DNA of 64,000 nucleotides from Podarcis filfolensis (taxonomy: Eukaryota): assembly GCA_964270895.1 (NCBI GenBank), contig OZ185442.1; one strand, 5' to 3'. Each line of letters begins with the position of its first letter. Positions within the stretch are counted from its first letter, which is position 1. Under the pieces are notes generated by a model. That model ran no database searches, was not told where the DNA came from, and saw nothing but the letters and a program-made list of their open reading frames with translations. Shown here one piece after another: positions 14,476-38,822 of the stretch. Position numbers and translations under genes: made by a program.

Positions 14476-14523
<48 letters not shown>
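14475..14523. repeat. (AAAG)n microsatellite
   Basis: About 12 units. Confidence 0.97.
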
Positions 14524-15458: not shown

Positions 15459-15671
15459 CTATCTATTCATCCACCGGCTGTGGCTGCAGCTGCTGTCATA
15501 GGTAGTATGTGGCTGAGAGCTAGTTTGGCTCGGGGCATTGATCCAGTTAGTTTCTCTGAGTCCACCTTGCTGCTGGTTTACTTTCTCTTCTTGCTGGGAA
15601 AGTAAGCACTGCAAGTCCTCTTGGTCACTGAGTGGGTTCTTGCCATACTCCTGCTGAATCCAGGCCCTGTA
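15459..15671 (-). CDS. dusp22a: DUSP22-like phosphatase, last coding exon (7/7)
   Basis: Acceptor TTGACAG| (AG 15673-15672); YRAWIQQEYGKNPLSDQEDLQCLLSQQEEK...SCSHSRWMNR*; 213 nt; stop TAG 15461-15459. Confidence 0.85.
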   Translation of the reverse strand, partial: YRAWIQQEYGKNPLSDQEDLQCLLSQQEEKVNQQQGGLRETNWINAPSQTSSQPHTTYDSSCSHSRWMNR

Positions 15672-17970
15672 CTGTCAAGACAAAATCCCGGAGAAGCTGC
15701 ATAAGAGATGAAGGATGAGCAAAGACAATGCAGGCAATGCAGGTAAAACCAGTGGGCACAGTGAAGCCTTTCCCAAGTTGGTGCTCTCCAGATGATTTGG
15801 ACTACAACTCCCATCAGCTTCTACTGGCTGGGGGCCAGTGGGAGTTGTAGTCTTAAGTGTCCAGTGGGCACCAGGATGAGGAAGACTGGCCTAACAGGTG
15901 TATGTCAGAAGCACCTGGCCTTATACAATTATGATGAAATGACAAGTGAATGCAGTAGTCTATTTTGCAAATGGATTCTCACTACATTGTTCAAATAGCC
16001 ACCTAAGTGGAGAGGATGTCATTGCCCACAGCAGTTTCTCTGGTTTGTATCCCCTGCCTTGTGTTATTATTAGTATCCTACTCAATATCTCCTCTTTCTC
16101 CCCTCCTCTCTTGTCTACTTGCTGTGCAAAAATATGACAATTAAAAAAAATTTTTTTTGAAAAAGCAGCAGCTGTGTTTTAAATGCAGAGTCATTGCTGT
16201 TTGGTTTTGAGCAAGACATTTGAGCTAGTTAAACAGGGGGGCAGGGAAATCACACCATGTGTGTTCAATTCAACTCAGAATAAAAGTTGCAGGAACTTAC
16301 CTAAAGCCATGTGAGTAAAGAATTAGGAAATAATGAATACATAACCCTTACAGCTGATTCCCCACGCTGGGAGGATCCCTTGTGAGCGCCACCTCCCACG
16401 CACAGCCATGCTAATGGTCCCCTGATCATTCATGTCCTTAAGTGGGCTACCCCCAGCCTATTGGGGGACTTCCAGTGGGATTTTTTTTAAAAGATTGCAT
16501 GTAATAATATATCTGCCCTCTGGGCCATGGAAATCTAATGCACAACTTTTATTCTTTTAATCAGGAAAGCATGCAATGTTTTGTTTCAAGGCGGAGGTGC
16601 AATGCTGTAGCTAGTCACACAGTAAAAAGGAAACTTGGTTTATTTCCTATCAAGGACTTGCAAGTAAACAATGTGATCCATAACCCCAAACTGCCACAAA
16701 GTAACCGATCCTGCATTCATGGCAAAAGTCAAGCGTCATTCTGCTTGGGTGGGTGGAGGACTCTGTTTTGCTTGCACCCTGCGTGAGACTTGGTTTTTTG
16801 TTTTACTAAGTCTTTGGCTTTCAGGGAAGTTGCCTGTTTTCTAGAGATACTTTTAATGTGTATTATTTGTTTGTTTGTTTCTTGAATAGGTGATGCTTTG
16901 CCTGCTTCTTGGTAGGTTCTGAGCTTTGCTAGTTTTTCTTCTGTGAAATGGGTATTTTGTGGTGCAACCACAACAATTCCTTAGATTTCCAAATGTGCCC
17001 CTGAACCCAAAAATGTTCAAGGACCTCTGCATGTTAAACTCTCTGCTTTCTCTGCAAAATAGGTTGTGGGCAGCATACCCATACTCAGTTACCCACTGAA
17101 AGCCATGGCCATTAATTTCAATGGCGACAACCCTAAGAAAGCCATATAGACAAGAGGGCTCTGCAAGTAGCTTGGGCTTCTGGCTCTCTTCCTGGATATC
17201 TGATAAGGGAGTGGTGGAAACAGTGGCTGTCTGCTGGAATGGTTAAGCTGTGTCTCCACCTACATGCAATCTGTGTACCTGTAAATATAATTCAAACATT
17301 GCAAAGCAGGGGGGAAAAAGTCACCAGGACCGGTAGCCTCCTTCCCAAGAAAACCAAACAAAGGGAAGCACCTGTCCCTAGAAATCTTCACAGTGAGGGT
17401 AAGCACAATGATATTGCTGTTTTTATTTCTCTTATCAGCTGCTGTGAACATGCTTGTCAGTTGGAAGCCAGCCTCAAAAAATATTTTAAATACATAAACT
17501 GCCAAATTGGTCATTGGAGGAAGAAGTCATGGCTGTATGTGCAGGTGCAGTGCTTTGGCAGGGTGTCAGAGTTGAGCTAGGAAAGAAATGGGCTTAGAAA
17601 AGCGAAGACTTGGGTGTGGCACACAATACTGCCATCAAGCACTTGATTGGCAAAGGTCTCAGTGCCAGTATGTCCTGCAGAGATAAGCTGGTTGGCTTTG
17701 CCCTGTGGAGCAGAACATCAGTCCTCCACACCCAAGTCTTGCAGTCTCTGCCCACAGATATAGCTGCAGCACAGAGTGACTTTCATTTAGAACTGAAAGT
17801 GAAAGTGGTTCTTGCCACTTTCTAGAGACAAGAGGAGCCCTGTTCAATCATATCAAAGGTCAGGGTTGCCACCTTTGGTCAGGTAAAATAAGGGACAGGT
17901 CGGGGGGGAATTGGGGGGCTAAAAATTACTTTACCTGGTGCAGAAGTGACTTCAAATCAATCCATTACAA

Positions 17971-18117
17971 CAGTGGCATAGCGTGGGGGGTGCAGGGGGG
18001 GCCGGCCGCACCGGGCGCAACATCTGGGGGTTAGGGTTAGGGGGCGCAAATCCACGGGTTAGGGGGCACAAATTACTTGCCTTGCCCCGGGTGCTGACAA
18101 CCCATGCTACGCCACTG
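17971..18117. mobile_element. hAT MITE containing TTAGGG motifs
   Basis: TIR CAGTGGCATAGC/GCTACGCCACTG; perfect 8-bp TSD CATTACAA (17963-17970, 18118-18125). Confidence 0.9.
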
Positions 18118-19666
18118 CATTACAATAGAATATGGGCTTTCCTCTCTCTCCTCCACTGGACCAGGCCCCTGCAAACTGCTTCTCTTGCTCTCCAACCCAC
18201 CACTGCTCCCCTGCCCACACAAAACCCGAGACTGCACTGTAGCAGACCTGTGCACTGCAGACCCCCTCTCTTGCTCTCTGCAACCCACCCTCTGCCTCCT
18301 GGTAGCCTACAAGCTGACTACAAAGGCAACCAGGGATGGACCCGTTACTATTTCTGCAGCAGGCAGGGTCCCTGTCTCCAGCATCCTATGGCTACCAAAT
18401 CAGCATAAAAGGGGAGCTTTTTAGCTACTGAGAAGTATTCTCATCCTTTGTGCTGATTGGTGCCACAGTGAAAGGAGGGGAGTCGGCCACTGAGGATTGG
18501 CTCCTAGGGTCACTCTGGAGATGGCGCTCAGGAAGAACAATGAGTTCTTCTGTATGTTCCAAAGCTTAAGTATTTAGGAGCACAGAAACCACGAGGTCCA
18601 AATCATTTGCCCGCACACGTGCACAGAAAATAGTAGATCTAGCTGAAATACAACACAGGGATCTGCATTGATTGTTTCAATGCATCCCTTATTAGTATTA
18701 TTGTATAATTATAAGATTGTTGCATAAACTTAGAAGGTTGTATAATGTGTATGACTATCATGAAGGGACCCTGCACAATTTACCACTACACCCCTTAGTG
18801 TGACAGGGATATGGTCTGGGGAGAGTTCCGAGGTCCAGATAGAGAGGCCACATTAGGCCCTCTGGCCTGAGGTTTCCCAGCCCTGCCCTTTCACATAGAA
18901 CAGATCTGCATTATGCCGCAAAACAAACAGTCGTAGAGTGAAAAGGGCCAGTTCATATCTTCAGCAACCAAACATCCTTCCTTGGGGAAATGTTCTGTTC
19001 TGCGAGGCGTCATGCCTGATGCCCAAGTCAGCTGAATTCATGGGGGATGCCCAAATCAGCTGAATTTGTGCCCTTTGGGGGAATGCCTGGCTCAAATAGT
19101 TTTTGCAAACTGTGGTACATTTTTCTCCGAAAGCCTTCTTGTGCAGCACCACCTCATCTTTCCACCCTCCTTCAGCCCACTCCTCAGCATGGGATATTCT
19201 CAGAATATCCTGGAGGTTCTTTATTTTAAAAGAAAGCAACAACTTTCTGAGAAGGGAAGTTAAAGCACAGGGCACTAGACCCATAAATGTTGGGAGTCAG
19301 GAGGAACCTGCGGACAGTCTCAGCTGTGAGACATGCTCACACTGGGTTTCCTTGGGGCACTGGGGGGAAAAACATTTGTTGCAAAGAAAAAGTACTTTCA
19401 CTTGCTGTCTCACTGTTCTTCAACAATCAGCTTAGGTCCAGGACACCTTCGAAGGATGGCTGTATTTTGGTACAAGTATTGTTCAGAAAATGTGAATTAG
19501 GGAGATTTGCCTATCAGTGCAAAGTGAATCTGATTCCTCTCTCATCACTGTGTGTGAGAGAGGAACAAGGAAAAAGCTAACTTTCAGCTATCTCTGAAGA
19601 CATGAGCCTGTAAATGTTGCTCTGAAGTGCCAACTGGGTTAGTAGACCAGAAGCATGAAGTCTTAC

Positions 19667-19838
19667 CTCCTTGAGCAGAGTGACTTCATACTCCTGAAGC
19701 TGTTCCTGGAAGCCAAAGTTGGGGCTCACATAAGAACGGACAGCTTTGGTGGCTGTCAGGCACTCTTCCCAGCCAAAGTTAGTGACCGTCATGAGATAGG
19801 CCACCAGGATGGTGGTGCTGCGAGACACTCCAGCTAAG
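19667..19838 (-). CDS. dusp22a: DUSP22-like phosphatase, coding exon 6 (second half of CX5R loop, AYLM motif)
   Basis: (C)LAGVSRSTTILVAYLMTVTNFGWEECLTATKAVRSYVSPNFGFQEQLQEYEVTLLKE; AG 19840-19839, GT 19666-19665; 172 nt. Confidence 0.95.
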
Positions 19839-20009
19839 CTGTTGAGCAGAAATAAAGGAGCAATGTTTTCAGTTAGGAACAGGAGTGAAGAAAACCCATG
19901 TTAGGATTGTGCAAGACCCCCAAGTCTTGCTCCCTCCACTCTTGGACATATTCCCAAGTTTGTACATGTACTACAGCATTCATGTATCATAGAATTCAAG
20001 ATGGACGCC

Positions 20010-20870
20010 CTCTTATCAAGTACCATTTTGCCACCTAAATGTTATGGAGGATAAGGCTATCAATGGCTGCTAAATACCACAGCTCTATTCTACCTCCTTT
20101 TTCAGAGACAGTATGCTGCTGAATACCAGTTACTGAGGATCACAAGTGGAGAGATTCTGCATGTATTCAGGTCCTGCATGTGGCCTTCCCATAGGCATCT
20201 GATAGACCACTATGGCAACAAGATGCTGGACTCAATGGACTTCTGGCCTAATCCAGCAGGGCTTTTCATATTTTCTTGACTTTATTATTAGCTTTCAAAA
20301 TCCTTGAGTCTTCATTTACGGTATTTATTTAGAGATTTCTAGCCCATGCGTCCAGTGCCTCCCTGTGTAATATGCAGAGTCACTTACAACAGTTTAAAGT
20401 TACTGTGTTTTGTTGTTGCTGTTTATTGCATTTACCAGTAACTTTATACCATTAAAAGTTTCAAAGTGACTTGACAAGCTAAAATATAACAGCAATGTAA
20501 AACTAGGAAAAATTAAAACCACCAACAATATAAAATATATAAAATGCTCATCCGGCAATGTATTAATAAGGACAAGTCCTATCCACCCCACTAAAAGATG
20601 AGCACCCCTGTAACAGGCAAAATTAATTAATCTAAGGGCTGGGTAAACAGTTAGGGCTTAGCCTGGTGCCTAAAGACTGACAAAAATGGTGCCAGGTACA
20701 TCTCCCTCAAGAGACGATTGCCCAGACAAGGGGCCATCACTTAAAAAGCCTGTTCTCATTACTTCTAATGGCAGTTTATTGTGGACTCTGTGCTACTCAG
20801 GCCTGCAAGCTTTTTTGCAGTGTCCATATGACATCATCCTCATCAAAATACCAAGCAATATTATTTCTTC
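20010..20870. mobile_element. CR1 3' fragment (+, about 20010-20270) followed by L2 3' fragment (-, about 20320-20870)
   Basis: CR1 'ttatggaggataaggctatcaatggct...atccagcagggct' end; L2 reverse tail 'atttatttagagatttctagccc...acttacaacag'. Confidence 0.55.
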
Positions 20871-23531
20871 ATTTACCTTTTCTGCCAGAAATTTGGTAAG
20901 TTAGAAAAAGAATACTCCAGAAAGGGTAAATCCAGATGAAATGGAAGGGGAGGATATGGGATGGCCTTATGATGGGTGCACTGTTGTGTGGATGTTGCAA
21001 AAAATGGACTCCACCATGAACTGCCATGTGACAGAACCCACAGCATCAACAACATAGATTTACAATGCCATAAAGGCAGAGGTCACAGATTAAACATTTT
21101 TTTTATTTGATTAATTTTATGACTCACTTCCCATGGAGCATATCAAAGCAATTTCAGAATTATTAGTAGTAGTGGTATTAATTTCCCGACTCGCCCTTCA
21201 CTTTCAGGTGCCAGGGCAGGTTGCAACAATTTAAAAATCAGCATTGAAAACAGTTAAAACAAATGGCAGTCACAGGGTGGGTCCTAACATATTGTTAAAA
21301 CAAGGGCATTAAATATATATATATATTAAATATATATATATATGGAAAAACCATTACATGTATAAAAACTTGACATGATCTTAGTGTGACTCTTGGCTAT
21401 CAAAATGAGAGACAAGCAGGGAGAAAAGGCTTTGAAATGATGGACATGGTTGATGACAGATGCTGGGAGTGGATTTGACAGTGAGAGTGGAGTGGCTCAT
21501 CGCCCTTTTGAAGCCTCTGCTTGGCTAATGAAGCCATTGGCTAGGATCCAAAGAATGGGGCAAAATGAAGGAGGCAGAATAGAAGAGTGTGTCTAGTAGG
21601 CAGCGGGTATCTTCACGCTCCAGCCCCACCTTCTGCAGATGGTTTCTGCACAATCCACATGATACATTGACTGACTTGTAAAATCTAAATAAATTTGCTG
21701 CAGCTTGCATAAGGAATCCTTTGGGGGGGGGGTAGCTAAAAGCTGCAACAGCATGCCAAACTAATCCTTCAGTGCTAGCTGAACGGAACAAAAGCAAGAC
21801 CTGCTTCTTTAGCTCAAGCCATTGGTGCTTTCAGAATTCCAACGATAACATCCAGCTTTGGGGGAAAGCAAAAGGTTGTTGACAGTGCAATCCTATCCAT
21901 GTCCACTTAAAGTAAAAGTATGCTCACTTTACCATCTTAGAGCTCAACAAAGTTGTTCCCTGTCCCCCAGGCATTTCACACCTCTTCCCTCCCCCCTTAC
22001 AAGGGTTCACATCAGCACCAGCTTCAATTCATCTGTTTGTGTGCACACCAGGGAGCATTGACAGAGCAAAGATGTCTTTACCTCATGGCAAGAAATGAAC
22101 TAGGAACAGCTTAAGGACTGCAGTCAGCGAGTCGCTTGTTTGAGAAACTACAGTGCCAAACAGTAGTACCATAGAACAAGAGATACATATGCATTTTGGA
22201 TAATGTTGTGTGAGCATGGATTAAAAACCCAGCACTGGAATCACGTAAGTGCACAGCAAACAGGAGTATAAACACAGCCCAGGGATGCTTCCAGGCTGTT
22301 GCTATTTTCTGGTGGGACTGAATCACATATCAGCAAATTCAGGTTGTGCAAGGGAAGTTTATTTGGAGCTTCCGCACAACAAATCAGCCCCCCTAAAAAA
22401 AATAAGACTCTTTGCAATAAGGAATAGGAAGATGCACAGAAAAGTGTGGGATAATGTTTCCTTGATGCAACAACATCTGACCTCCCCACAAACTAATCCG
22501 AATGGACTCTCAGTGACTACCGGGTGTCACCTAACCTCCCTGCAAACTTTGTACAAACAAATCAAGCTGAATGCTCAATAAATTTGTCACCTGGAAGTGG
22601 TTGAAGTCCCGCTACATTCAATACTGCTTCCTTCCGAGTATACATAGATAGGATTGCAGCCTTTATTTTTCTCCTATCTCAGCCTATATTAAACTCTAGC
22701 AAATTTGCGTGACCTAAATGTATGTATATCAATCAATCTCTTTATAATGATCAATGACCAGTATTCAAAAAATACAAATTTATAAAATAAAACAAAACCA
22801 TACAAAATAGAGAACCATAACAATAAAATTACTAGTAAATGTACTGTACTGTAGAACACCAGGAACAGAATTGTGAGTTTGCTAAAATTCATCCCTGGTA
22901 GGTATTTAGCCATCCTGGAAGAGGTGGATGCCTTGTGATCTGGAAGCATAAAATGCATCCAAATGTCCTTGGAATTTCTAGTAAAAATGTTAGGTATATC
23001 ATGAGGAGAAGAGCAATACATAAGAGCATGAGTTGTTGAATCTTCCTCTCCTGATTCACAGGGACATTTACGTTGACATTAGGGAATTATTTGAAACCTC
23101 CCCTCCAAAACAGCTAGTATAACAGCATTTAAATGCACCAGAGTGAAGGCTCTGTGGTGTTTTGGAACAGAGAGCAGATAAAGATGGCTGAAGTGCTCTG
23201 TCAATTAAAATGTTATTTGAGGTTAAACCTAGATCATTTTGGCATTCAGCATCTGCAATGTGTTGCCTGAGTATTGTTCAGGCCATTTCATTTCCCATGA
23301 AGATAAGATAACTCATGGAAAAACCCATAACGCTGCCACTTTTCAGACAACGATTGTTTCAAGCCTGAATGAAAATCATCCTGCAAGGTTAAGGGAGCCA
23401 GATCAGTCGAGTATGTATGTATAGCCTAGGAATGACTGCCAGCAGGTTTCCAGAGATATATAAATGTCTGTATACATATATTATAGTGTGCTCCCCATCC
23501 TGAAAAGGAAAGACAGAGAAAAGCAGCTCAC

Positions 23532-23606
23532 CAATGAATGAGACATCCTCCTCCGTGTAGCCGACATTCATGAATAAACTTGATGCACTCCTTGAAGTGT
23601 TGTATC
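23532..23606 (-). CDS. dusp22a: DUSP22-like phosphatase, coding exon 5
   Basis: (L)IQHFKECIKFIHECRLHGGGCLIH(C); 75 nt; CAG acceptor, GTGAGC donor. Confidence 0.95.
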
Positions 23607-24874
23607 CTGAGAGCAAAGAAGAAAAATTAGGAATTGTTTGCCCTGAACTAGAGATGAAGGTGAAATTTGATTCAGCATGAGAACCAAATCACAGCTATCC
23701 TTCAAAAAGTGTTACTCATCCAAAATTTTGTGATGCAGTTCTCCAATGGAATAATGTTTACAAAAATGCATATATTAGGGGAAAGGGTGCAAATAAATGA
23801 AGGTATTAATGAAAATACCATACAAAGATGCATTAAATTAGGGGAAATTGCTCACCGAAATGTGGGAATGAGTAAAAACTGCATGTAAAAATGTGTTTAT
23901 TAGCAGAAATTTGCTTTGACGTGCTTTATATTGTGTGTTTTATATTGTAAACTGCCCTGTGATCTTCAGATGAAGGGCAGCATAGAAATTTAATAAATAA
24001 AATATAAATAAATAAACTGTCAGCACCCTAACAAACAACAGTTCCCAGGATACTTTGGAGGAAAATGTAAGTGTTTAAATTGATATGATACTTCTTTAAA
24101 TTTATGGTGTAGATTTGGTCTAGGACTCAGGGTCATCCAACTGAGTAGATCTTAAACAAACTAAATGAAGTCCTTCATCACACAATGCATTATTATTAAT
24201 TCACGAACTCACTACCACTTGATGTGATGGTGGAAATTGACTTCATATTGTCAGTATGTTGCAGGACAGATTGAAAGTGACAAGGAAATGCACTGGAAAG
24301 TATGGAATGAATGAATGACTAATGGGAAGGTGTAACAACACCCCTCAAACAAATCAAGATGAACGTTCATTGCCGTATAACCGCCCTGCAAACATATCAG
24401 AATGTATGCTCATTAAAGACCAGACCAAATCTAAACTCTGCATTAGCTTTGTGCAAGCCACTCAGGAAGAATGCTGAATAAACTGGTCATCTGGAGAACT
24501 TAGATGGCTTTCAAATGGAAATAGACAATTTCATGGAGGAGATGAGCTTATCAGTGGCTCATAGGTGTGCTGGTAGCTAAATAGAACCTAGAGAAGGGCA
24601 GTATAGCTGTGAATGCCAAACGCAATTGCAGGAGAGGCTTGTAGGCTTTCCAGAGGCATCTGGTTGGTGAAAAGGTGGCTGCTGGAATAGATGGATTGAT
24701 GGTCGGATGAAGAAAGGAAGTGCTGTAGCTCAGTAGCAGAGCACATGAGTAGCCTGCAGAAGATCCCAGGTTTAATCCCAGCATCTCCAGGTTTTAGACC
24801 CCTGTCTGAAACCTTGGAGAGCCACCGCCAGTCTGACTCAGTATAAGACAGAATTAGGCAGTATAAGACTCAGT

Positions 24875-25235
24875 CCCCAATGACGTGCTCTATGGGGAAC
24901 TGACTTCAGGCTCCAGGCACATTGACAGACCAACTCTATGTTACAAAGATGTCTGCAAATGTGACATGAAGGCTGGCAACATCAACCCTGCCCTGTGAGA
25001 ATCCCTTGCAGTGCCTGGAGACAGACAGACAGGTCGTGTATCCATAGCAGTGACCAGACGAGGAATGACTGTGAGGAGCTCAGGGAGAAGAAATGCCATG
25101 GTGCATCTGCAGCAGCACAATTAAATGCCTTTGTCTGCCCCAGATGCAACAAAACATGTCTGTCCTGTATCAGTCTCTACAGCCACAGCAGGCAGTACAC
25201 TCCTCCATTGTCTACCGAGACAATGCCAACATGTA
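24875..25235 (+). mobile_element. RTE-clade LINE ORF C-terminal fragment, disrupted
   Basis: Translates PNDVLYGELTSGSRHIDRPTLCYKDVCKCDMK...FVCPRCNKTCLSCISLYSHSR, matching the RTE 'LYGEL..G.R..GRP...YKD..K.D' motif and terminal Cys/His finger; contains a stop and frameshift. Confidence 0.75.
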
Positions 25236-26262
25236 TAAGGCATCTGTGCAAGCCTGCACCCTCCTAAGTCTGCACACAAGGGGCACAAGATCACTGCATC
25301 ACATCACTGAGAGTTATCCACACCTACAGTCAGATCTGTGCACGTTCCTGCCCCTCCCCCTTCCCTTTCACCCTTTAGTGCCACTCCTTTGATGCTGGCA
25401 AAGGAACTGACAGCACCTCCTTTGACCTTCACTTACGAAAAGGAAATGAAAGAAAAATGAAACCAAACAAAGGTGTGGGCAGCGCCAGAAGCAATGCCAG
25501 TAAAGAGGCACTTAACACTGTACGTGGCAGTCAGATTTCCTGCTTGATGATAAGCCTGGTAAACTTGAGGCATGCTGAGAAAAAGGAGACTCATCCCAGG
25601 TCCTTGACACCTCAACAAAAGGTGTTTCCATTCACAGAAATAACATTCAGGTACTGTAAAATCCCCTTCTCGATTTCTTCACTCTGGCCTGATGAGAAGT
25701 GGATGACGAGGTAATGAATCCTCTCAATTTGGTAATCTATTTTTAGATCCTGAGTGCAGAATTGTTTATTTAAAAGTCAAAATAGAATTGTTGTTGCTGC
25801 TGCCAGTGGTGTAGTGTGGGGGAGCCATGGGGCAGTTGTCCCGCACACAACATTGCCAGGGGTGCAAAATTTCAATACCCATTGCTGCCTCAATACAGCT
25901 GCCCACTTTCGTCCCTGGGCTCCATTGAAAACGGCTTCTCCATGAGAATCAGAAAGTGACCTTTCCATACAACAGAGTGACTCTTCTTTTCTTATCTCTG
26001 AGGATGCAATATCCTGGATGATGTTGACACCATTAGGCAGTTGAATGCGCATGCGTACTCTGTCCATTTCCCTCCCTCCTACCCACCCCCTACCCACAGC
26101 CTCGGGAGCTGGCTACTCACACTACACCACTCGTTGCTGCTGTTCTTGTTGTTGTAATAATAATAAATTTTCTTCTCTGCAGGATGCACACACTTTTTAT
26201 TTCAGGAATTTTAAGTGAGTTTTTCTGATGAGATGGACAGTTTTAACTGATCTTAAGATATA

Positions 26263-26585
26263 CTAGCAACCTCATACCCATTGTTGCTCAGGAATTCTAA
26301 AAAAACCAAAAAACCAGTGCAGTTTTGAAATCCTTGGTTAAAATCAGTGCAGTTTTGAAATCCTTGGTTAAAATCAGTTCAGTTTTGAAATCAGTGGTTA
26401 CAATCAGTGCAGTTTTGAAAGGTTCAAGTCCACCATCTTGATTCCAAATGGCACCCAATTGTATCTCAGCATAGACAAAAACCCACTCTTCGATCTCAGG
26501 AACTATCATGTAAAATTAGGTGATGACAACTTAGGAGATGTCCAGATGCATAGCAAACAAGCAACTTTCCACGATATGCAGTTCA
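26263..26585 (-). mobile_element. Probable non-autonomous Helitron with internal tandem repeat
   Basis: Minus strand ends ...CCTGAGCAACAATGGGTATGAGGTTGCTAG|T (CTAG terminus plus decayed subterminal hairpin); no TIR or TSD; 5' end uncertain. Confidence 0.45.
26311..26420. repeat. 30-bp tandem repeat, about 3.7 copies
   Basis: Unit aaatcagtgcagttttgaaatccttggtta at 26311, 26341, 26371 and partially at 26401. Confidence 0.95.
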
Positions 26586-27814: not shown

Positions 27815-28150
27815 TGTCTTGGGGGTAAAGAACCATTTTCAGCCTGAGGGCCACATTGCCTTCTAAGCAGCCTTCTGGGGGCCACATGCCAGTGATGGGC
27901 AGGGCTGGAGGCAAAAGTGGGTGGAGCAACAAATGTGAATTTTCCTTTTTTACAGACAGCTAGTTTCTACACACTTTCACACTGTCTTCCATTCAGCGAA
28001 ACGAAGGGCAGTGTCAGAGTTCAAGGACAAATTCGAGGTTAAGCACTCAAGCAGAGTCAATGAGTGAATGATGTGGTCTAAGGAAATGAGGCCATGGCCA
28101 GGGAGAGGCTTGGAGGACCACATTCAGGGCCCAGCCTGAGCTTTCCCATC
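27815..28150. mobile_element. Old hAT-like non-autonomous element; related copies about 58905-59015 and 59660-59950
   Basis: 'aaccattttcagcctgagggccacatt...gggggccacatgccagt' is the reverse complement of the 58930-59010 segment. Confidence 0.55.
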
Positions 28151-28300
28151 TCTGCTCCATGCACTAACATAAGATGGATCAGTGTGTTGATTACAAAACC
28201 GGTTTCTCTGATGAACAACAAGTGAGAAAAACAGGATTGCTCTCCAGGAAAGCTAGCATGTTTGCATTGTATACAGGCTGAAAACCCTGAGAGAACTTAC

Positions 28301-28350
28301 AGGTTTTGATTCGAAGAGTCTGAGGCTGATATGCAGAGGTAGGTCATGTC
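28301..28350 (-). CDS. dusp22a: DUSP22-like phosphatase, coding exon 4 (general-acid Asp57)
   Basis: DMTYLCISASDSSNQN(L); 50 nt; TTTTTTCACAG acceptor, GTAAGT donor. Confidence 0.93.
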
Positions 28351-28775
28351 CTGTGAAAAAAGAGACAAACTTTACAAGGGACTTGTGCATTCCACTTCAT
28401 GCAGGAGGCACAGCACAGTAAACAAATGGCGGGACATCTGCTATTGTTCTGTGATAGTCCTCAGCGTAACCTCAGATTTGTTATTTGCACTTAGCACAAC
28501 CTCATCTGATTAAGAGCCAAACAACTCATTATCTTGGAGCTCCATTTTAGAAATGTGTACTGACCACGAGATTCAGTTCAGACCACAGCATTGTAAAATA
28601 AGCTTGAGTTGGCTTAGACTAAATTGGAGACTACCTGGTCCAGCTCTGGGGTCAGATTCTGCTTCATTCCCTCCACCACCAGGCACGACTGGGGAATCAA
28701 AACATGGCCACAACTTTTTCCCCCCTTTTGAAAGCCACCCAGAGTGGCTGGGGTAACCCATTCAGATAAGAGGCA

Positions 28776-28818
<43 letters not shown>
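28776..28818. repeat. (TTA)n microsatellite
   Basis: About 14 units. Confidence 0.97.
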
Positions 28819-28821
<3 letters not shown>

Positions 28822-29536
28822 CACAGAAGTGGGTAAAATTTGCAGACATAGTAACCCATCCAGGTTCAGGGGTACTTCTGTTGGACAACTCTAAAATGTT
28901 GTCATTTGAAAAATAATAATTGTGGCACTATGGAAAACAGCACTATTTGTAAGTCTGGATCATTGAGGTGCTCCAGGGCTCCCTGCTTCAAACTGTGCCC
29001 CTATGATGCTTTCCCTTTTCAGAGCCCCAGCATAACAAGTAATTATGCCCTAAATCTGCATTACGCCCTCTGCACCAGGTTGATGGAAGAGTTCTGATCA
29101 GATGCAGCCAGCCTGATGGAAGAGTTCTAGGAAACATAAAACCTTGCTCACTGTTTTATGATGCTTTAATCAGCCCCAATGAAGATGGTTGCTGTCAGAT
29201 GACCTGTTAGTTGAGCATTGACCCTCCCTGATCTCTTTGCACTAGGTCTGCGAGGGCGCTAAGCAACATCAACTGCTTGCTGAGCATTCATTCCTATTTG
29301 TTTTCAGGGAGGTTAGAATCATAGAATTGTACATTTGGAAGGGATCCCAGGGGTCATCTAGTCCAAACCCCCTGCAATGCAGAAATCACAGTTAAATGTC
29401 GTTGTCAAGCAAATATGCCAGGCATTCCACTGCTTCTTCCCATCACTTTTCTCATCCCCATAAGCCTAATGCTATGGTGGAACAGGTTTGCTGTGCAAGA
29501 GCACCAAATCAGCTTAAATGTGAAACCTGAATAACG

Positions 29537-29784
29537 TCATACCTTGGATCCCGAACGTCTTGCGAGTCAAACATTTTGGCCCCCAAACGCCGCAAACCTG
29601 AAAGTGAGTGTTCCGGTTTTGTGAACGTTCTTTGAAACCCGAACGTCCAATGGGGCTACCGCGGCTTCTGATTGACTGCAGGAGCTTCCTGCAGCCAATT
29701 GGAAGCCGTGCCTTGGTTTCCAAATGTTTTGGAAGTTGAACGGACTTCCGGAACGGATTCCATTCGATTTCCAAGGTACCACTG
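29537..29784. mobile_element. Tc1/mariner-pogo-type MITE (second subfamily; left TIR eroded)
   Basis: Right end ccaaGGTACCACTG|TA; left end 'ataccttgg' remnant. Confidence 0.7.
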
Positions 29785-31588
29785 TATCTCCAGCTGAAAG
29801 GACCTCAGGTGACAGGTGACTGTGGAGAAAGCTCTCTCTCTCTTCCCAAGACCAGTTGCCACCAGCCAAATTGGACAATACAGGGCTGGAGAAGCCCATG
29901 GTTTGAGCTGGCATATCACAGCTTCCTATGTTCAGATGCAGAAAAAGAGAGGGGGGACTGATATAGTCCAAATTAACCATCAAGCTAAGCACACCACAGA
30001 GCAGAGACCTCATCCAACTTGAGTCTACCTGCTGCTGCTGCACAATTTTCAGATTGTTTTCTATTGGACCAAGTCATTCCCAACTTGGTTCATCTATACG
30101 TAGGTTGTTGCTTTTTTTTAAGGGGGGGGGGAGACAACACCGCTAGTATCAAAAATACTTTTTGCGGACAGTGTTGCAACACGTTTGCAACAGTAAAATC
30201 TTCCAGGCAGTTGCTAACCTCTCCCTCTCCTGTCCTCACCCCACCCCATCCTTCCCAGGCAATCACACAACAATACACATCAGGATTAATTACTATTCTC
30301 CACTGAAGCTTCCTCCCACCCCTGCTCACTACCAGAGATGGGACCCCCCCACCCCACCCCCATGCACACTCTCTCAGCATTTGCTGGAGGGCTAGGCATG
30401 GGAAAGGAGCTTGACTCTGCAATTCTTTTTGCCAGAGTGACAAATTGCTCAATGCACCCGTGTGTTTCCAGTTCCCCTTTTCTCCCTGGCCTCATTCACT
30501 CCATCATGTTGTAAGACCTCTGCGCCCATTTGCCATCTGTCTGGCAAGTCTGCAGAGATGCGGTCCAAGCAGCTGCGGCTTTGGTGAGCGGTTTTTGCTC
30601 CCTGCATTTGATTTCCCGCCCCCCCCCCCGATGACATTAGTCTGTATCTCTTACCAAGAAAATGGCTTTCATGGAGTTCATTTTCAAAATAAATACATAC
30701 TGTATTTTCTTGGGAAGCAAAGCAGCATGTATCGCCTGGGCAAATTCACCCACCCAAAACCAACACCATCAGTACACACACACAACTCTCTACAGCTGTA
30801 TTCAGTCATGCGGTTTATTGCATTAGTTTTACTGGTTACAATGCTAGTGCCTCTATCCTGATTTCTAACATGTCTTTTAGGCTACATTTATTCTATAAAT
30901 TTAAAGTGCTATCATGCCACTTTAAACAGTCATGGCTTGCCCTAAGGAATTCACTTAGTTCAAGTGCTGAGAGCTGTTAGGGGAACCCTGATTCCCCTCA
31001 CAGAGCTACAATTCTCAGAGTTCCCTGTGAAGAGGAGTTGATTAGTAAACCACCCCAGATTTCTTTGGTGGAACTATGACTGTTAAAGTGGCATCACAAT
31101 GCTTTAAATTCAAGGTGTTAATGTGGCCCTGGAAACAGCTAACACAGAAATGAGCACTGAACAGCTGTTAGATTTCCAGAAGTGGTTCTTTGGCTATGTG
31201 AAGTATCACATAAAGTGTGAAAATTATCAGGTAAGGAAACATCAGGGAAGCAGAATAAACTGCTATTAGCAGCAGCTGCATCAGAAGGTGCCTTGTATCA
31301 AGTCAGATAATTGGCGCATCTAGCTCAGTATTGCCTACACCAGATACAGGAAACCTCTGGCCCTCCAGATGTTGCTGCACTACAACTCCCATCATCCCCT
31401 GGTCGTTGGCCATGTTTAATTCCATTTTATCTGAACAAAAAAGTCCCCAACGTAACTTTGTAAGATGCTGGAGAGGGAGGGCCTACAGCAAAACCATAAC
31501 CCAAAGTGAGGGCTAAAGAGCTGAGGAGGGGGAGTATAAGAAGCAGTTTGTACTGTGCCACATTTTATTATGTTTTAAGTTGCTTTTA

Positions 31589-31931
31589 TGGGACATGGGT
31601 TAAACCACAGAGCCTAGGACTTGCCAATCAGAAGGTCGGTGGTTCGAATCCCCACAAAGGGCTAAGCTCCCATTGCTCAGTCCCTACTCCTGCCAACCTA
31701 GCAGTTCGAAAGCACGTCAAAGTGCAAGTAGATAAATAGGTACCGCTGCGGCAGGAAGGTAAACGGCATTTCCATGCGCTGCTCTAGTTCACCAGAAGCG
31801 GCTTAGTCATGCTGGCCACATGATCCAGAAGCTGTACGCTGGCTCCCTCGGCCAGTAAAGCAAGATGAGCGCCGCAACCTCAGAGTCATCCACAACTGGA
31901 CCTAATAGTCAGGGGTCCCTTTACCTTTACC
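31589..31931 (+). mobile_element. Sauria SINE, near full length
   Basis: gggttaaaccacagagcctagg...agcagttcgaaagcacgtcaaagtgcaagtagataaataggtacc...ggggtccctttacctttacc; 14-bp TSD TTAAGTTGCTTTTA at 31575-31588 and 31932-31945. Confidence 0.93.
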
Positions 31932-32535
31932 TTAAGTTGCTTTTAGCCCTGGAGGCAACAAAAAAAACCACTATTATTATCATTTAAATTGGAGAAATGC
32001 TAGCCAATCATAGAATCACAGGGTTGGAAGGGACCTGAGGTTCATCTAGTCCAGAGGTTCTCAACCTTTTTGAGTCCACGGCTCCCTTGACCAACTGCAT
32101 TCTTTCTACAGCACCCCAGTATGACCAGTGGTTGAGGATGATGGAAGCTGTAGTCCAGCAACATCTGGAGGGATGCAGATTCCCCATCCCTATACTAGAC
32201 AAATCTGGCATTACAAGACAACTGAAAGCAAGATCTGTTAATGCACAGCATGTGGAGGGAGGGAGGGTTGGGAAACCTGGCATAATCATTTCTGTAATTG
32301 CACTGCCCTCTACTGGCTTGTGACATTTCATAACTTCACCACAGAAATAATTACCTTCATGCATTCACATTTTAGCTGGGGAAGCCAAAGAAATATGAAT
32401 GAATAAGGTGGCAAATGGCCTGCAGCTGGGGTCCCTAAAGCATTTTACATATTTTCCAGCTGTCATGTTTTAAGTAATTGGATTCCTCCTTATTGCTATG
32501 ATCCAAGATGCTCCAGATCTCCTCTCCGTACTCAC

Positions 32536-32618
32536 TTCCAGCACAGGCTTAGCATTATTATGCACCGACAAGATGTGTGTGATCCCATTCTTCACTAAGT
32601 TCTCTTTGTCCTCAGAAT
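32536..32618 (-). CDS. dusp22a: DUSP22-like phosphatase, coding exon 3
   Basis: (D)SEDKENLVKNGITHILSVHNNAKPVLE; 83 nt; TTTCCAG acceptor, GTGAGT donor. Confidence 0.95.
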
Positions 32619-33390
32619 CTGGAAAGAAAGAGAGACTTCTAAGATCCAAGATGAATAAAAAGGTGCATTAGTTCATAACCCTTGCTTTAATCCAGCAAAG
32701 ACCAAAACAGGATGTTACATAGAAAGATGTGTGTAAACTTTCTCCCATTTTTTTAAGGGAAAAGCAGCCTCTGGAAGCTGCAGATTTATCACCAGAAAAG
32801 TGCTATGGAGGACTTGACCCTTTCCCTTCCAGCCAATGCAAAACCTCCCTCAAGTAAAGATATTGGTACTTATGTGTAGCTTCTACTTTGGTCCTTGTGT
32901 TCTTAAGCAAGGATTTGCCCACATGTGGACACTATTTAGCTGTTCATCCACTTCTCCACCTCCTGTTGAATTAAACCACAGCAGTCCACCCACACATATA
33001 TTAGGAGCAACTTCAGTCTTTCCCATTCACAACAGGAGGCATTCTGTCTTGTGATTGTCCCCACCTTCTAATCTGTTGATTCTAATATGTGGGCTAATTT
33101 TATTATTATTTTTTCTAGTGTGTACGTGTTTGCAAGGGGACTGGTTGGCTTTTAATGCTGTTACCATAAATTGTTGTGTGATTTTTATTTTGCATTTTTG
33201 TTCTTGTTTTCTCTCTTTTCGAATACTGTATGTATAAGACCCTTTGGGGAAAGCACTTGATAAGCGGTGTATATATTATGCAAATAAACAACTACAGATT
33301 AAACTAACTATGAAGAAATTATGAACATGCACTCTTGCTTTATAACATTAAATCATGTGGATGGATCCAGCCCCAGATTAAGACCCTTAG

Positions 33391-33660
33391 TGTTAAATAG
33401 TGGGTAGACATATCAGACGACACAGCGATTCTTCAAACAGCTCTTGTTTATTCACAGGCCAGAACAGAACTGAACTGAACTTAACTGAAGGGTTCAGCCA
33501 GCCTGCTTATATAGAGCTCCACTACAACGCAACTGTAACAACTTTCTGTAACTATCCAATCACTGAACGTCACTTTCAATCCCTTATTTGCATATGTGGA
33601 CCTGAGTGAAAACTATCTACAGTATCCCCCTGCTGGCCCAGAGTGAGAACTTCAGTAGCA
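33391..33660 (-). mobile_element. Solo LTR of an LTR retrotransposon
   Basis: TG...CA termini. Minus strand order is octamer ATGCAAAT (33593-33586), inverted CCAAT, TATA CTATATAAG (33514-33506), AATAAA (33452-33447), i.e. U3-R-U5. TSD imperfect (CTTAG/CTGAA). Confidence 0.8.
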
Positions 33661-34039
33661 CTGAAGCACTGAAAATATTGTTGTGCCCTCCCCGCCCCAT
33701 ATGTAACTCAAAATAAAAGCAGTGCTAAACCATAAAATGAAATTTTGTTTTTCAAAATGGCACAGAACTTACCTGTATGTTAAAATGGCACATATGCCTT
33801 GTGAAACACATGGTTCCCTTGCATTATATCAATCTATGTTAGTAGGACACTTCCTGGTCTTGGTGGGGATAAGTAATAATACTCCTAAATCTATAACAAT
33901 ACATACACCATGCAAAGATGAAACCAGCTCATCATTCCACAGTTGTACTAGATTCTAGGAGGAGGAGGAAGCAGAGGCCACATACACTGATCATAATAAA
34001 CATCTGCTAGGAGACAGGCAGAGTTTGAAAAACACTTAC

Positions 34040-34073
34040 CCCTGATGTTTCCAAGGTACAGCCCCCCTACAAC
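34040..34073 (-). CDS. dusp22a: DUSP22-like phosphatase, coding exon 2
   Basis: VVGGLYLGNIR(D); 34 nt; TTTTCAG acceptor, GTAAGT donor. Confidence 0.92.
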
Positions 34074-34978
34074 CTGAAAATAAGCCAAGAAAAATAATTA
34101 GTGCTGCAGGCGCTGTCCCTTGTGAACAAGATCCTCCTGGGCTTATTTTATTTATTTCATAAAATTGATTGTAAAAACAAAAAAACCAAGCAAACCTCAA
34201 AGTGGTTTACAAAAAGATAAAACAAGAAAACAAAAGAAAATATTACAATATTTTAAAACATACAGAAAGTTAAATTACTAAAAATAATTATTAAAATTCA
34301 CACTTTCTATGCATCTGGGTAGGCTTAACAGTAACGTTTTTTAGAGGAAAAGAGATGGAAGTATCTGCCTATTTTTGTTCTCTTCATTTCTCATTTTTCC
34401 AATCTTAAATTCAATTCTCCACATTTCTGCAAGAATGGTCTCATTTAAAAAAAAAATCTCATAGAAATTCTTCCTCATTTGGGGAAGAATTTCTCCTGGC
34501 ACATTTTTGCACCCAGTTTTGAGTCACATACATGTTTTTGCATGCAAGTGTTCATAATGCATTTTGGTATATGTCCATTAATGTATTCATTTTTATATTG
34601 TTCTCATATTGTTTCAGGAAGTGCGAATTTGATAAGTTCAGCTTTAAATGTGAATGGAAATAAATTCCTCCCCAATCCCTTCTCCCAGAGCACAGGTCAA
34701 TCCCCTGGAGCTGACTAAGGGTGGACAGAATGAGGACCAGTATCTACCAATAGATCACTGAATGATTTGCAGTAGACCAACATGGATTTCTTCTCCGTTC
34801 CCCACCCAATTCTTTAACCATTGCAATAACTTCCCAGTCCCCAAACCTGGCTTCTGAAATGAAGAAAGCATGAGAGGAGAGAATTCTGAACAGATTTGAG
34901 GGGCAGGGCTGTAGCTCAGAGGCATAACATCTGCTTTGCATTCAGAAGGTCCCAGATACAACCCTCAGAATCTCCAGG

Positions 34979-35157
34979 CATGGGTGTAGCAGATTTTTTG
35001 GGGGGGAGTGGACTTTTGTGGGAGGGCAGGACTTTCATTAGTGGGGGCAGAACTGATGTGATTGATTGGTTGGTTGGTTGGTTAGTTAGTTAAGTATTTC
35101 TACTATTTTACTTGATCTGGGGGGAGGCAGCTGCCCTCCCCCCGGGATACGCCCATG
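34979..35157. mobile_element. hAT MITE nested in a Squam3-like SINE
   Basis: TIR CATGGGTGTA/TACGCCCATG; perfect 8-bp TSD TCTCCAGG (34971-34978, 35158-35165) taken from the SINE body. Confidence 0.88.
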
Positions 35158-35261
35158 TCTCCAGGTAGGTCAGGGAAAAGCTCCTTGCCTGAAACCATGG
35201 GAACCTGCTGCCAGTCAGTGTAGATCAGCCAGAGCTAGATGCACACATGATCCAACTCTGC

Positions 35262-35284
35262 ATATCTATCTATATCTATCTATC

Positions 35285-35319
<35 letters not shown>

Positions 35320-35332
35320 ATCTATCTATCTA
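35262..35332. repeat. (TATC)n imperfect microsatellite
   Basis: tatc/atct runs with single-base interruptions. Confidence 0.95.
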
Positions 35333-37660
35333 TAATCTCAGCTTCCTATGAGAGGACTGTGAGCTCAGTTCTAGGACTTGGGCATAGATTTGGTGCCTTT
35401 TAAAAAGCAGCATTCTGAATCCTTTGCCCACTGCCAGCCTCACAAGGAACACACAAAGCGCCAGGCAACCTAAACATCAGGCCTTCCCGGCGTGACCTTT
35501 CAAACAGACACGGCTTGGCTTCCCACCAGCAGCAAGGGTCTGCTGTGGCCCAGAGACGCCATGGCTCTGTTTTGCGTTTCTATAGCAGCCAGCGCAGATC
35601 TTCCAAACAACTCCACTACGAGAGACGGCATCCAGGGCAGGCACACACGAAGGTGCTATTTTTAAATGCTTAGCTCGAGACATCTGAACAAAACAGGCCC
35701 CCTCTCTCTCGTTCCTTCCTCCTGCTCTGAAGAGCAAAGAACAGTTACAACGTGCTGTGTTCCCCGCCTGCCTCCTAACAAAACGAACTTGGGCAGTGTG
35801 GTACAGTGGTTAGAGTGTCAGACTAGGACCTGAACAAGTCAGATTTTGTAGAAAGCATTATGACAATGAGCTATCCTCCATGGCGGGTGGTGCCTATAGG
35901 AGCTGGTAGGGTGTAAGACAGGGAGCCCAACAGTAGGTGGAGCCAGAGCCAGTGGCAGATGCAGACAATTACTGTACCAACTGAGCCAACTCAGCCAACT
36001 AGTTTTGCCCCCATCCTCCTCCCTGCTGTGTTCTACAAGGGCAACATTGAGACTAAGGAAGATGAAGCTGACAGGCAGGGCCACCCTCCTTGAACTGGTT
36101 GGAAGTAGGAATGCAGGCAAGTAGGAGCAGGCTGAGTTTGGTGGGACAGTGTCCCGTTTGCCCTAATAGACCTGCCTCTGCTGAATATCCTGCCTACTGT
36201 TGCAGGAAAGTGAGCCAGCCAGCTGAGAAAACCTCTTGTCCGCAATTATTTCAATCCAGAAACAGGGAGGTCGGCAGTCTCCGATTTGAGCAGGCATTTT
36301 TATCTGGGTCAGAGGATCTAATTTTAATTCAGTAAAGCTGTGACTTTTCCTGTACAGGCAGTAAACTGATCCCACTGCCAGGCACCCAGCTGCATGTTAA
36401 ACAAATAGTTCTTCAGTGAGTTGTTGTTGTTGTTGTTGTTAAAAAGAATACCAACCAATATTGCTGAATGTCTTCTGATAAAAACAGGAGGCTGCAGCAA
36501 GTGTAAGTGGGGTGGAAAGCTCACTAAGTGGGAAAGGTAAACTGGAGGGAGTTGAGAGTTCTCTGGAAACACAGACCAATAGTTTAGTAATCCTTCTAAC
36601 ATCCCTGCAAGGTAGGCCATTGTTGTTATCGTTAATATTGCAGACAGGGAAGGCTGAGGGAATATAGCTTGCTTGGGGCCACTGTAAATTCTTCGCAATA
36701 GGCAAGTATTCCTCTGAATTACCAACAATAAGTTGCTGGGAATTTCAAACAGGGAGAGTGCTGTTGTGTTCAGGTCCTGCTTGCTCACTTCCCAACTGGG
36801 GTATCTGGTTGGCCACTGTGAAGACAGAGTGTTGGACTTGGTGGGCCCTTGGCCTGATCTAATGGGGATCTTCTTATGTCATGAAAATTTGAACTAGCAG
36901 CTTCTCAGCTCATCCTTCCATCCAGTGCTCTTCGGTGGAGCAGGTGGATAAATTTACACAATGGACTTAATGGTCTTACAGCGATGATCAGGTGTGCTGC
37001 TTCAGTCGTGGAGCTGACAATCAATGCTTCTATTCCCTCTACCCTGCTGTTCCATGGCTTACAACTACCTCTGCATCCCTGATACGTTAGAGCCATGCTC
37101 ACCAAGGACCATGTCTGTTGTAGCAGTTGTGATACACTGTGCTCGATACTGCATGGTTTTTAATTGTATTTTTATTGCTTGCTTGCTTCATTCATTTATT
37201 CATTTATTCATTTATTTATTATTGCATTTATATCCCACTTTCTTTTTATTCAGAGAGCTCAAAGTGACTAACATGGTCCTCCCCTCTCCATTTTTTATTC
37301 TTACAACAACCCTGTAAGGTAGGTTAGGCCCAAGGTCACCCAGTGAGCTTCAGTTCCTTGAACCCTGGTCTTTCAGGTCCTGGTCGGACATTCTGAGCAC
37401 ACTAGCTCAGTGTTTACTTTTTTACATTGTATACTATTGTATTACAATTTGCAATCAATCAAACTGAATTTCTAATGAAAGAAGCAATAAACATACAATT
37501 GAAAATCAATATGACTACTGAATGCAGACATGCTTTGAAAGACTACCTGAGTGAAGTTTCTGGACCACTGGTGGTCCACAGTTTGAAAACTCCTGTGTTT
37601 AAGCAAAAAGCCACCAAAAAGTCGGTTTTGCCACCCGATTAAAAATACGAAAGTGTGCAT

Positions 37661-37796
37661 CAGACATAGGCAAACTCGGCTCTCCAGATGTTATGGGACT
37701 ACAACTCCCATCATCCCTGACCACTGGTCCTGTTAGCTGGGGTTGTTGGGAGTTGTAGTCCCAAAACATCTGGAGGGCCAAGTTTTCCTATGCCTG
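37661..37796. mobile_element. Palindromic hAT MITE ('ggactacaactcccatc' family); at least a dozen decayed copies, e.g. 5110-5235, 6055-6180, 12590-12720, 15770-15885, 46400-46530, 52050-52225, 58007-58146, 60920-61050, 63530-63640
   Basis: TIR CAGACATAGGCAAACT/AGTTTTCCTATGCCTG; perfect 8-bp TSD GTGTGCAT (37653-37660, 37797-37804). Confidence 0.9.
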
Positions 37797-38484
37797 GTGT
37801 GCATGCTCAGACTCACTTAAATCACAGCCACATTAATGGATAATTAGAATTTGCTGCTGCTGCGGTGTTAACACATGCCCGACAATAATGAGCCAATTTT
37901 TAAGGTAAAAATAATAAAAACGTCAACATGCCTACCTGGCTGCCACAAGATTATAAAGTGTTTTTAAAAAGGAAAGGAAGGGAGGACACTGGGATGGCCA
38001 GCATCAAGCCGGTTCAGCCCCAGCATACAGTGCCTGTTTGCTGCTGCTTCCATCCTCGTCATGGGTGGGGGAGGGCAGGAGACTGGACTTTGGCCCTGGG
38101 GTGCGGCCCTGCTGCTCCACCAGCTGCTCCACAACCACTCAAACTGAGCCTTATTTCTTTGACATAAATTGCTTCACTGCAGACTTCCCTAACCTGGTCC
38201 CTTCTCGATTTTGGGGGACTACCAAGTCCCATCAGCCCCAGTCGTGCTAGTGCAGTCTCGTTGGCCAAGTGTCCAGCCAGGACCCAGGAGACCAGGGTTC
38301 AAATCCCACTCAGCCATGAAACTCATTGGGTGACCTTGAAGACCAGTCCCTCTCAGCTTAACCTACACCACAGGGTTGTGGTGGGGATTTAATGAACGGG
38401 GGAGAACCATGTAAGCCAGCTTAAGCTTCTTGGAGGAAACAATGGGATATAAATGCAACAAATAAAATAAAATAAAATACTACC

Positions 38485-38734
38485 TAGAATCATAGAATCA
38501 TAGAATCATAGAATCATAGAATCATAGAGTTGGAAGAGACCACAAGGGCCATCGAGTCCAACCCCCTGCCAAGCAGGAAACACCATCAGAGCACTCCTGA
38601 CATATGGTTGTCAAGCCTCTGCTTAAAGACCTCCAAAGAAGGAGACTCCACCACACTCCTTGGCAGCAAATTCCACTGTCGAACAGCTCTTACTGTCAGG
38701 AAGTTCTTCCTAATGTTTAGGTGGAATCTTCTTT
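38485..38734 (-). mobile_element. Young CR1 LINE 3' fragment in the DUSP22-like intron, 67 nt from the donor
   Basis: (TAGAATCA)x5 octamer tail followed by gagttggaagagaccacaagggccatcgagtccaacccc... Confidence 0.88.
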
Positions 38735-38801
38735 ACCTTCTTTACCTTACCACCCCCATTCCCACTTTTTGCTAAGTTGCAATGAACCCCAAGGATTGTA
38801 C

Positions 38802-38822
38802 CTTACTCATACCGGTCCCCAT
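38802..38822 (-). CDS. dusp22a: DUSP22-like phosphatase, coding exon 1 (MGTGMSK, N-myristoylation motif)
   Basis: GGTGGC-ATG GGG ACC GGT ATG AGT AAG|GTACAA; 21 nt. The seven exons sum to 648 nt (215 aa plus stop) with all phases compatible. Confidence 0.88.

Follow-up and report, generated by a model that had tools for sequence, protein, structure and literature searches.

A dual-specificity phosphatase gene upstream of IRF8 in the wall lizard Podarcis filfolensis is very probably the orthologue of zebrafish dusp22a

A stretch of 64,000 nucleotides from the wall lizard Podarcis filfolensis (assembly GCA_964270895.1, contig OZ185442.1), referred to below as the window, was found to carry a phosphatase gene of seven coding exons between COX4I1 and IRF8. 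This gene is, with high confidence, the wall-lizard orthologue of vertebrate DUSP22A (zebrafish dusp22a), present in an intact, expressed and constrained form. A first-pass annotation of the window, made from the letters alone, had described it as an intact, IRF8-linked paralogue of DUSP22 that is retained in squamates and lacking in mammals. The gene model, transcripts, protein features, phylogeny, synteny and selection are described below, together with the alternatives that were weighed and the distribution of the gene among vertebrates.

The seven exons (21, 34, 83, 50, 75, 172 and 213 nt) were recovered on the minus strand by splice-site logic. All introns have GT...AG ends with a polypyrimidine tract before each AG, and the joined coding sequence (CDS) of 648 nt is translated without an internal stop into 215 aa containing HCLAGVSRS, so the exon sizes, splice sites and uninterrupted open reading frame (ORF) of the first-pass annotation are all confirmed in the window; GLYLGNIRD and NNAKPVLEDMTYLCI were both found in the translation. 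The coding part of exon 1 (38822-38802, 21 nt) starts with ATG and encodes MGTGMSK, a myristoylation-type N-terminus with Gly2, and a first coding exon of 21 nt recurs in 8 other mapped loci. It is followed by exon 2 (34073-34040, 34 nt, VVGGLYLGNIR), exon 3 (32618-32536, 83 nt, DSEDKENLVKNGITHILSVHNNAKPVLE), exon 4 (28350-28301, 50 nt, DMTYLCISASDSSNQN), which carries the general acid Asp57, and exon 5 (23606-23532, 75 nt, LIQHFKECIKFIHECRLHGGGCLIH(C)), which holds the first part of the P-loop and was the sole AG...GT candidate of 60-99 nt with the right phase, an open frame and the expected His of the H/C motif at its end. Exon 6 (19838-19667, 172 nt, (C88)LAGVSRSTT...LLKE) provides the P-loop residues Cys88, Ser93 and Arg94 and Asn128 of the N-loop, and the coding part of exon 7 (15671-15459, 213 nt including TAG) encodes the 22-A-specific tail, YRAWIQQEYGKNP...SRWMNR. 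On the same strand, the region of the 5' untranslated region (UTR) and promoter (38823-39459) showed 78.5% identity with its Rhineura counterpart. Five large intronic ORFs (138-158 aa) within the gene had no match in Pfam. The span of the gene differs widely among species (platypus 75 kb, catshark 167 kb, zebrafish 54 kb, window 23 kb, pigeon 13 kb), with seven coding exons in all.

For transcription, RNA runs were chosen by words shared with exons 6 and 7, and contigs from four runs under three organism labels (related lizards, 90-99% identity to the window) were placed on positions 14400-20000. One contig per run, in all four runs, joined 15671 to 19667, skipping 3995 nt with CT..AC ends, which is GT..AG on the minus strand. 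The exon 6-exon 7 junction, the only junction compared with reads, was thus seen exactly as predicted. Exon 6 (19667-19839) was covered by contigs in four runs, and the depth over the exons was 18-212 versus approximately 0-10 over most of the intron. On the 3' side the contigs reached 14534-14540, just past the AATAAA at 14551-14546, indicating a 3'UTR of approximately 925 nt (14534-15458, minus strand). On the 5' side they ran 242-402 nt beyond exon 6, where exons 5-1 need 263 nt and the rest is room for a 5'UTR; one contig extended approximately 139 nt beyond the CDS length upstream of exon 6. Because of this extension, and because the exon sizes are identical in eight other species, the joining of exons 1-5 is also supported. 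The coding parts of the relatives' transcripts contained zero insertions or deletions, and 8 of their nine coding differences were synonymous, the remaining one being T186S. In the 3'UTR, 22 nt at 15393 were missing from the transcripts of one organism relative to the window, and the other small indels among the relatives were also confined to the 3'UTR. Two spots in intron 6 (approximately 15773-15819 and 17962-18121) reached RNA depths of hundreds to more than 10,000, with many contigs continuing into unrelated sequence; they resemble short interspersed repeats that are transcribed genome-wide and do not belong to the gene.

Full-length relatives were retrieved by querying 1.8 billion representative proteins with exon 6, and a public protein with 99.5% identity (P0184) stood in for the full-length protein. 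The window protein is identical at 214 of 215 positions to the "dual specificity protein phosphatase 22-A-like" proteins of Podarcis muralis and P. lilfordi and at 212 of 215 to the 22-A-like protein of Lacerta agilis, all three being 215 aa long. Exon 6 alone matched the Pfam domain DSPc (PF00782, 1.9e-13), and among solved structures (PDB) its best match was human DUSP22 (1.3e-16), followed by DUSP15 (1.2e-13). The P-loop motif HCxxGxxR(S/T) is present as HCLAGVSRS with C88 and R94. Residues D57, C88, S93, R94 and N128, which include the general acid D57 and the Asp-Ser-Asn (DPN) triloop D57/S93/N128, are all present in the window protein and invariant across 43 orthologues. In human DUSP22, D57 is the general acid, C88 the nucleophile and R94 the phosphate-binding residue, and these, together with the Asp57-Ser93-Asn128 hydrogen-bond network, are all required for activity (PMC7589817). 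The conservation of this set suggests that the DUSP22A protein would be an active cysteine-based phosphatase. In addition, MGTGMSK fits the myristoylation pattern (G2, S6), and the conservation of G2 among the orthologues is 90% or more. DUSP22 has an N-terminal myristoylation site (PMC7589817), and by analogy DUSP22A may be attached to the membrane through N-myristoylation of Gly2.

The AlphaFold2 (AF2) model was made for the P. lilfordi protein, which differs from the window protein at a single position. Its predicted local distance difference test (pLDDT) score was 84.6, with values above 90 for most of residues 11-170, and in it a dual-specificity phosphatase (DSP) fold extends to approximately residue 155 and is followed by a long helix (161-185), with the end disordered. 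The fold is of the DUSP22 type, as the top Foldseek matches were human DUSP22 structures with a template modelling (TM) score of 0.95, a root-mean-square deviation of 1.1-1.3 A and 59-60% identity, and the DUSP15 structure gave a TM score of 0.92-0.93 at 49% identity. The 65-residue tail ends in SRWMNR, and this RW.NR end is kept from frog to platypus and is missing in DUSP22.

To place the protein among its relatives, a tree of 72 proteins was constructed with IQ-TREE (LG+C20+F+G4), rooted on two oyster DUSP22-like proteins, with DUSP15 left out. The relatives were gathered with three further seeds, namely a bird relative, a lungfish DUSP22 and a platypus relative. The vertebrate sequences were split into two clades, 22-A (support 99/99) and DUSP22 (99/92). 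The 22-A clade includes sharks, sturgeon, teleost dusp22a, lungfish, coelacanth, amphibians, platypus, turtles, alligator, birds, squamates and the window protein, and the DUSP22 clade includes lungfish, sturgeon, teleost 22-B, amphibians, mammals, birds, turtle and squamates. All of the 200 bootstrap trees that were examined kept the 22-A sequences together in a single clade, and each of nine genera (Varanus, Anolis, Pogona, Heteronotia, Pantherophis, Columba, Protopterus, Geotrypetes and Acipenser) contributes one gene to 22-A and one to DUSP22. Danio dusp22a was among the closest relatives of the platypus orthologue. Identity to the window protein was 74% for platypus 22-A, 67% for catshark 22-A, 61% for zebrafish dusp22a (73% in the catalytic domain), 51% for mouse DUSP22 and 50.5% for Varanus DUSP22. 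The window protein is therefore not DUSP22 proper, since it falls outside the mammalian DUSP22 clade and its neighbour is IRF8 rather than IRF4, and the earlier proposals of a distinct IRF8-linked paralogue, closer to teleost dusp22a than to DUSP22, are borne out by the tree and by the synteny described below. A DUSP15 sequence was sought among the best 150 representatives and none was found; the UniRef entries named "DUSP15" (P0239, P0024, P0386) are really 22-A. As to DUSP15 itself, its structural similarity to the window protein is below that of DUSP22, and the neighbours in the window are COX4I1 and IRF8 by similarity to the genes of other species.

The locus is shared as well. DUSP22A lies between COX4I1 and IRF8 in one orientation in the window, zebrafish, piranha, pigeon, Rhineura and Eublepharis. 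The order is EMC8(-)/COX4(+)/dusp22a(+)/IRF(+) in both zebrafish and piranha, EMC8(-)/COX4(+)/22-A(+)/IRF(+) in pigeon and COX4/22-A/IRF in Rhineura and Eublepharis; COX4/22-A was seen in Xenopus tropicalis and in the turtle Pangshura. In the window, the coding exons of COX4I1, the upstream neighbour (42279-47097, minus strand, the last coding exon ending at approximately 42297), were 60-81% identical to COX4 in pigeon, turtle, frog and piranha. The first two coding exons of IRF8, the downstream neighbour (1932-4182, minus strand), showed 89-98% identity to the IRF gene after 22-A in pigeon and piranha, with the ATG at 4182 (MCDRNGGRRLRQWLIEQ...) and the next exon at approximately 2150-1932. 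COX4I1, DUSP22A and IRF8 are thus on a common strand in that order, as had been proposed, with the IRF8 ATG 11.3 kb beyond the DUSP22A stop codon. The first six coding exons were 21/34/83/50/75/172 nt in all 8 of the 22-A loci mapped by exact exon mapping, and only the last exon varied among the mapped loci (177-213 nt). The true DUSP22 of Varanus has the identical six first exon sizes, in agreement with the sizes that the first-pass annotation had given for human DUSP22. No gene was found within 10 kb of this Varanus DUSP22, hence no DUSP22-IRF4 linkage was visible there.

Selection on DUSP22A was estimated as the ratio of nonsynonymous to synonymous substitution rates (dN/dS; Nei-Gojobori), comparing the window gene with each other species. 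The values were 0.167 overall, 0.149 in the catalytic part and 0.175 in the tail against Rhineura, 0.104, 0.071 and 0.163, respectively, against Eublepharis, and 0.05-0.09 overall against turtle, pigeon and platypus. With overall values of 0.05-0.17, DUSP22A is under purifying selection in the catalytic domain and the tail alike, and the ORF is intact in each sauropsid sampled.

On the reading adopted here, DUSP22A is an ancient paralogue among the small atypical dual-specificity phosphatases of the DUSP22/DUSP15 group and has kept the ancestral position between COX4I1 and IRF8, with DUSP22 beside IRF4 and DUSP15 beside IRF10. Catalysis is predicted to proceed through the Cys88/Arg94 P-loop with Asp57 as the general acid and the Asp57-Ser93-Asn128 network, in a phosphatase that may be myristoylated on Gly2 and anchored to the membrane. 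The tail (helix 161-185 and the disordered stretch to SRWMNR), unlike that of DUSP22, probably gives the protein its own partners or substrates, and the gene would have been lost on the therian stem, with monotremes retaining a copy.

Other origins of the gene were considered. Under one of them, a true DUSP22 orthologue was translocated beside IRF8 in lizards, and among solved structures both exon 6 and the fold do match DUSP22 best. However, the window protein belongs to a separate clade (99/99) and is 50.5% identical to Varanus DUSP22 versus 61-67% to the 22-A of fish and sharks, the DUSP22 clade holds a second gene from five squamate genera of the tree, and the order COX4-22A-IRF8 is also found in teleosts and birds. 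The tree, the zebrafish synteny and the identities refute this origin, which is given almost no credence. The same holds for a DUSP22 duplicate or retrocopy of recent, lineage-specific origin that came to lie near IRF8 by chance, an extremely improbable reading in whose favour there is family resemblance and nothing more. It is refuted by the six introns at ancestral positions, by orthologues at the equivalent locus from zebrafish to pigeon and by a clade that takes in chondrichthyans. A transcribed but decaying relic, heading for the loss seen in therians, is very unlikely. Its loss from one large lineage means that the gene can be dispensed with in some contexts, but the ORF is intact in all sampled sauropsids, dN/dS is low with the tail included, 8 of 9 within-genus coding changes are synonymous and the catalytic residues are invariant in the 43 orthologues.

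The reading of the window gene as an intact, expressed and constrained DUSP22A has several points against it. The synteny of platypus 22-A could not be shown: the 10-kb flanks of the 75-kb gene hold no called gene and gave no tblastn match to the COX4I1 and IRF8 peptides of the window. Reads were examined at one of the six splice junctions (exon 6-7). The branching order of the three paralogues was taken from PMC1634998 because DUSP15 is absent from the tree, and a strict whole-genome-duplication origin rests on the same paper. The therian loss rests on annotated proteins rather than therian genomic DNA, and the activity, myristoylation and substrates of the DUSP22A protein are all inferential.

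Proteins named 22-A were found in birds (including pigeon, ratites, ducks, quail and ptarmigan), crocodilians, turtles, tuatara and many squamates among the sauropsids, and elsewhere in platypus, echidna, amphibians, lungfish, coelacanth, sharks, a chimaera, bichir, sturgeon and teleosts. No marsupial or eutherian 22-A orthologue was present among the best 120 relatives of the bird query or of the platypus query, and every marsupial and eutherian protein found falls under DUSP22. At the level of annotated proteins, this pattern points to a loss of DUSP22A on the therian stem. The loss is therian, not mammalian, because platypus and echidna keep intact orthologues of 213 aa. The earlier claims are modified accordingly in two respects. 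Absence from the human lineage agrees with the annotated therian proteins, but retention extends to most vertebrate groups and is not a squamate feature. The statement that mammals lack the gene stands for marsupials and eutherians within the relatives retrieved and fails for monotremes, whose intact copies are the kind of mammalian orthologue that the first-pass annotation had named as contradicting it.

The implied novelty of the gene was also not upheld. DUSP22A is annotated in most vertebrates except marsupials and placentals and is thus an ordinary known gene; the exact 215-aa model is public for three lacertids (Podarcis muralis, P. lilfordi and Lacerta agilis), and the paralogon was published in 2006. 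That paper described a four-fold paralogon with DUSP22-IRF4, DUSP15-IRF10-COX4I2, COX4I1-IRF8 and IRF9 (Wotton and Shimeld 2006, PMC1634998), and reported that Xenopus and teleosts, "unlike chicken and mammals", carry a "dusp family member" in the COX4I1-IRF8 region (PMC1634998). The statement on birds is corrected here because pigeon, ratites, ducks, quail and ptarmigan have 22-A; the avian absence in the 2006 account is an early-assembly artefact (birds were sampled without Gallus). As for function, dusp22a was down-regulated by poly(I:C) in salmon macrophage-like cells (PMC5591513); in the literature searched, dusp22a appeared in teleost transcriptomics only, and no amniote study was found. 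The UniRef names of several 22-A orthologues (P0239, P0024, P0386, P0448, P0191) are misleading, being "DUSP15" in emu and cod and "JNK pathway associated phosphatase" in platypus, and the Anolis 22-A entry is labelled "Interferon regulatory fa...". Such labels probably reflect naming by the nearest human gene, or an IRF8 read-through model; automatic naming often mislabels 22-A as DUSP15, DUSP22 or JKAP because humans have no orthologue.

Several non-coding features of the window surround the three genes. The block 8491-9081 is conserved with Rhineura, and its part 8781-8846 also with turtle; located where the first-pass annotation had placed the IRF8 transcription start site, about 6.8 kb beyond the end of DUSP22A, it is plausibly the IRF8 promoter or a non-coding exon 1. 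A second block (12790-13054) lies between the 3' end of DUSP22A and IRF8. Its conservation reaches 73% in gecko, 74% in turtle and 79% (over 85 nt) in pigeon, and it is a candidate for an ancient element regulating IRF8 or DUSP22A. In the Rfam scan of the window the sole hit was a weak tRNA match (30.1 bits vs. a cutoff of 29) at 4972-5043 on the minus strand, in the first IRF8 intron; a similar piece occurs in Rhineura, and the match is probably a tRNA-derived repeat. Upstream of COX4I1, the stretch 50001-52000 is GC-rich (53%) and lies where other species carry EMC8 on the opposite strand, and it is probably a promoter island shared by COX4I1 and EMC8.

The second block bears on why the linkage to IRF8 has lasted, a question separate from the function of the protein. 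The linkage may persist mainly since the introns and flanks of DUSP22A carry regulatory elements of IRF8, the phosphatase gene being a bystander, and this explanation is regarded as unlikely. Zebrafish and lizards have both kept the gene order of their last common ancestor, and block 12790-13054 is conserved to gecko, turtle and pigeon. However, it is the single deep non-coding block found and is intergenic rather than intronic (the introns were outside the comparison), and the protein itself is under strong purifying selection, so DUSP22A is kept for its own function as well. An extended form of this idea, held to be somewhat less probable still, is that the COX4I1-DUSP22A-IRF8 order is held by regulatory elements of IRF8 within and near DUSP22A and that therians lost the coding exons only, the gene body being kept as the upstream regulatory region of IRF8. 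The evidence for it consists of the one deeply conserved block and the conserved order, nothing else. DUSP22A might also be co-regulated with IRF8 in myeloid cells, and, if the idea is true, the lizard, bird and monotreme locus would show what the upstream enhancers of mammalian IRF8 were like ancestrally.

Returning to DUSP22A as the orthologue of zebrafish dusp22a, the gene carries little weight as a discovery, being publicly annotated in hundreds of vertebrates, this lizard genus included. The results are useful in that the 2006 claim of no bird gene is corrected, the loss is placed on the therian stem, and a conserved, constrained and apparently active phosphatase is flagged that lacks an amniote functional study in the searched literature.

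Compared with known systems, the window gene is closest to zebrafish dusp22a and the NCBI 22-A(-like) orthogroup, with which it shares the clade (99/99) and the locus EMC8-COX4I1-DUSP22A-IRF8, as well as seven coding exons, the first six exon sizes and all catalytic residues. In the tail, W188 is common to the orthogroup and the window protein, and the ...W.NR end is shared in tetrapods and sharks. There is no difference of kind, the last exon being 213 nt in the window versus 192-210 nt elsewhere. Human and mouse DUSP22 (JSP-1, JKAP; IRF4-linked) resemble the window protein in the DSPc fold, with approximately 60% identity in the catalytic domain, in D57/C88/S93/R94/N128, and in the MG..M.K N-terminus with Gly2, and the first six exon sizes are as in DUSP22A. 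In contrast, the two clades diverged before cartilaginous and bony fishes split, the chromosomal neighbourhood of DUSP22 is another one (PMC1634998), and the C-terminal tails are unrelated. The substrates of DUSP22 include Lck, UBR2 and FAK (PMC13147768), and a JNK, Lck, UBR2 or FAK-type role, or a role in immune signalling, could be suggested for DUSP22A by analogy only. DUSP15 (VHY; IRF10/COX4I2-linked) has the small atypical-DUSP fold and paralogon membership in common with DUSP22A, and differs from it in the lower identity in the fold alignment (49%) and the weaker exon 6 score (1.2e-13 vs. 1.3e-16 for DUSP22).

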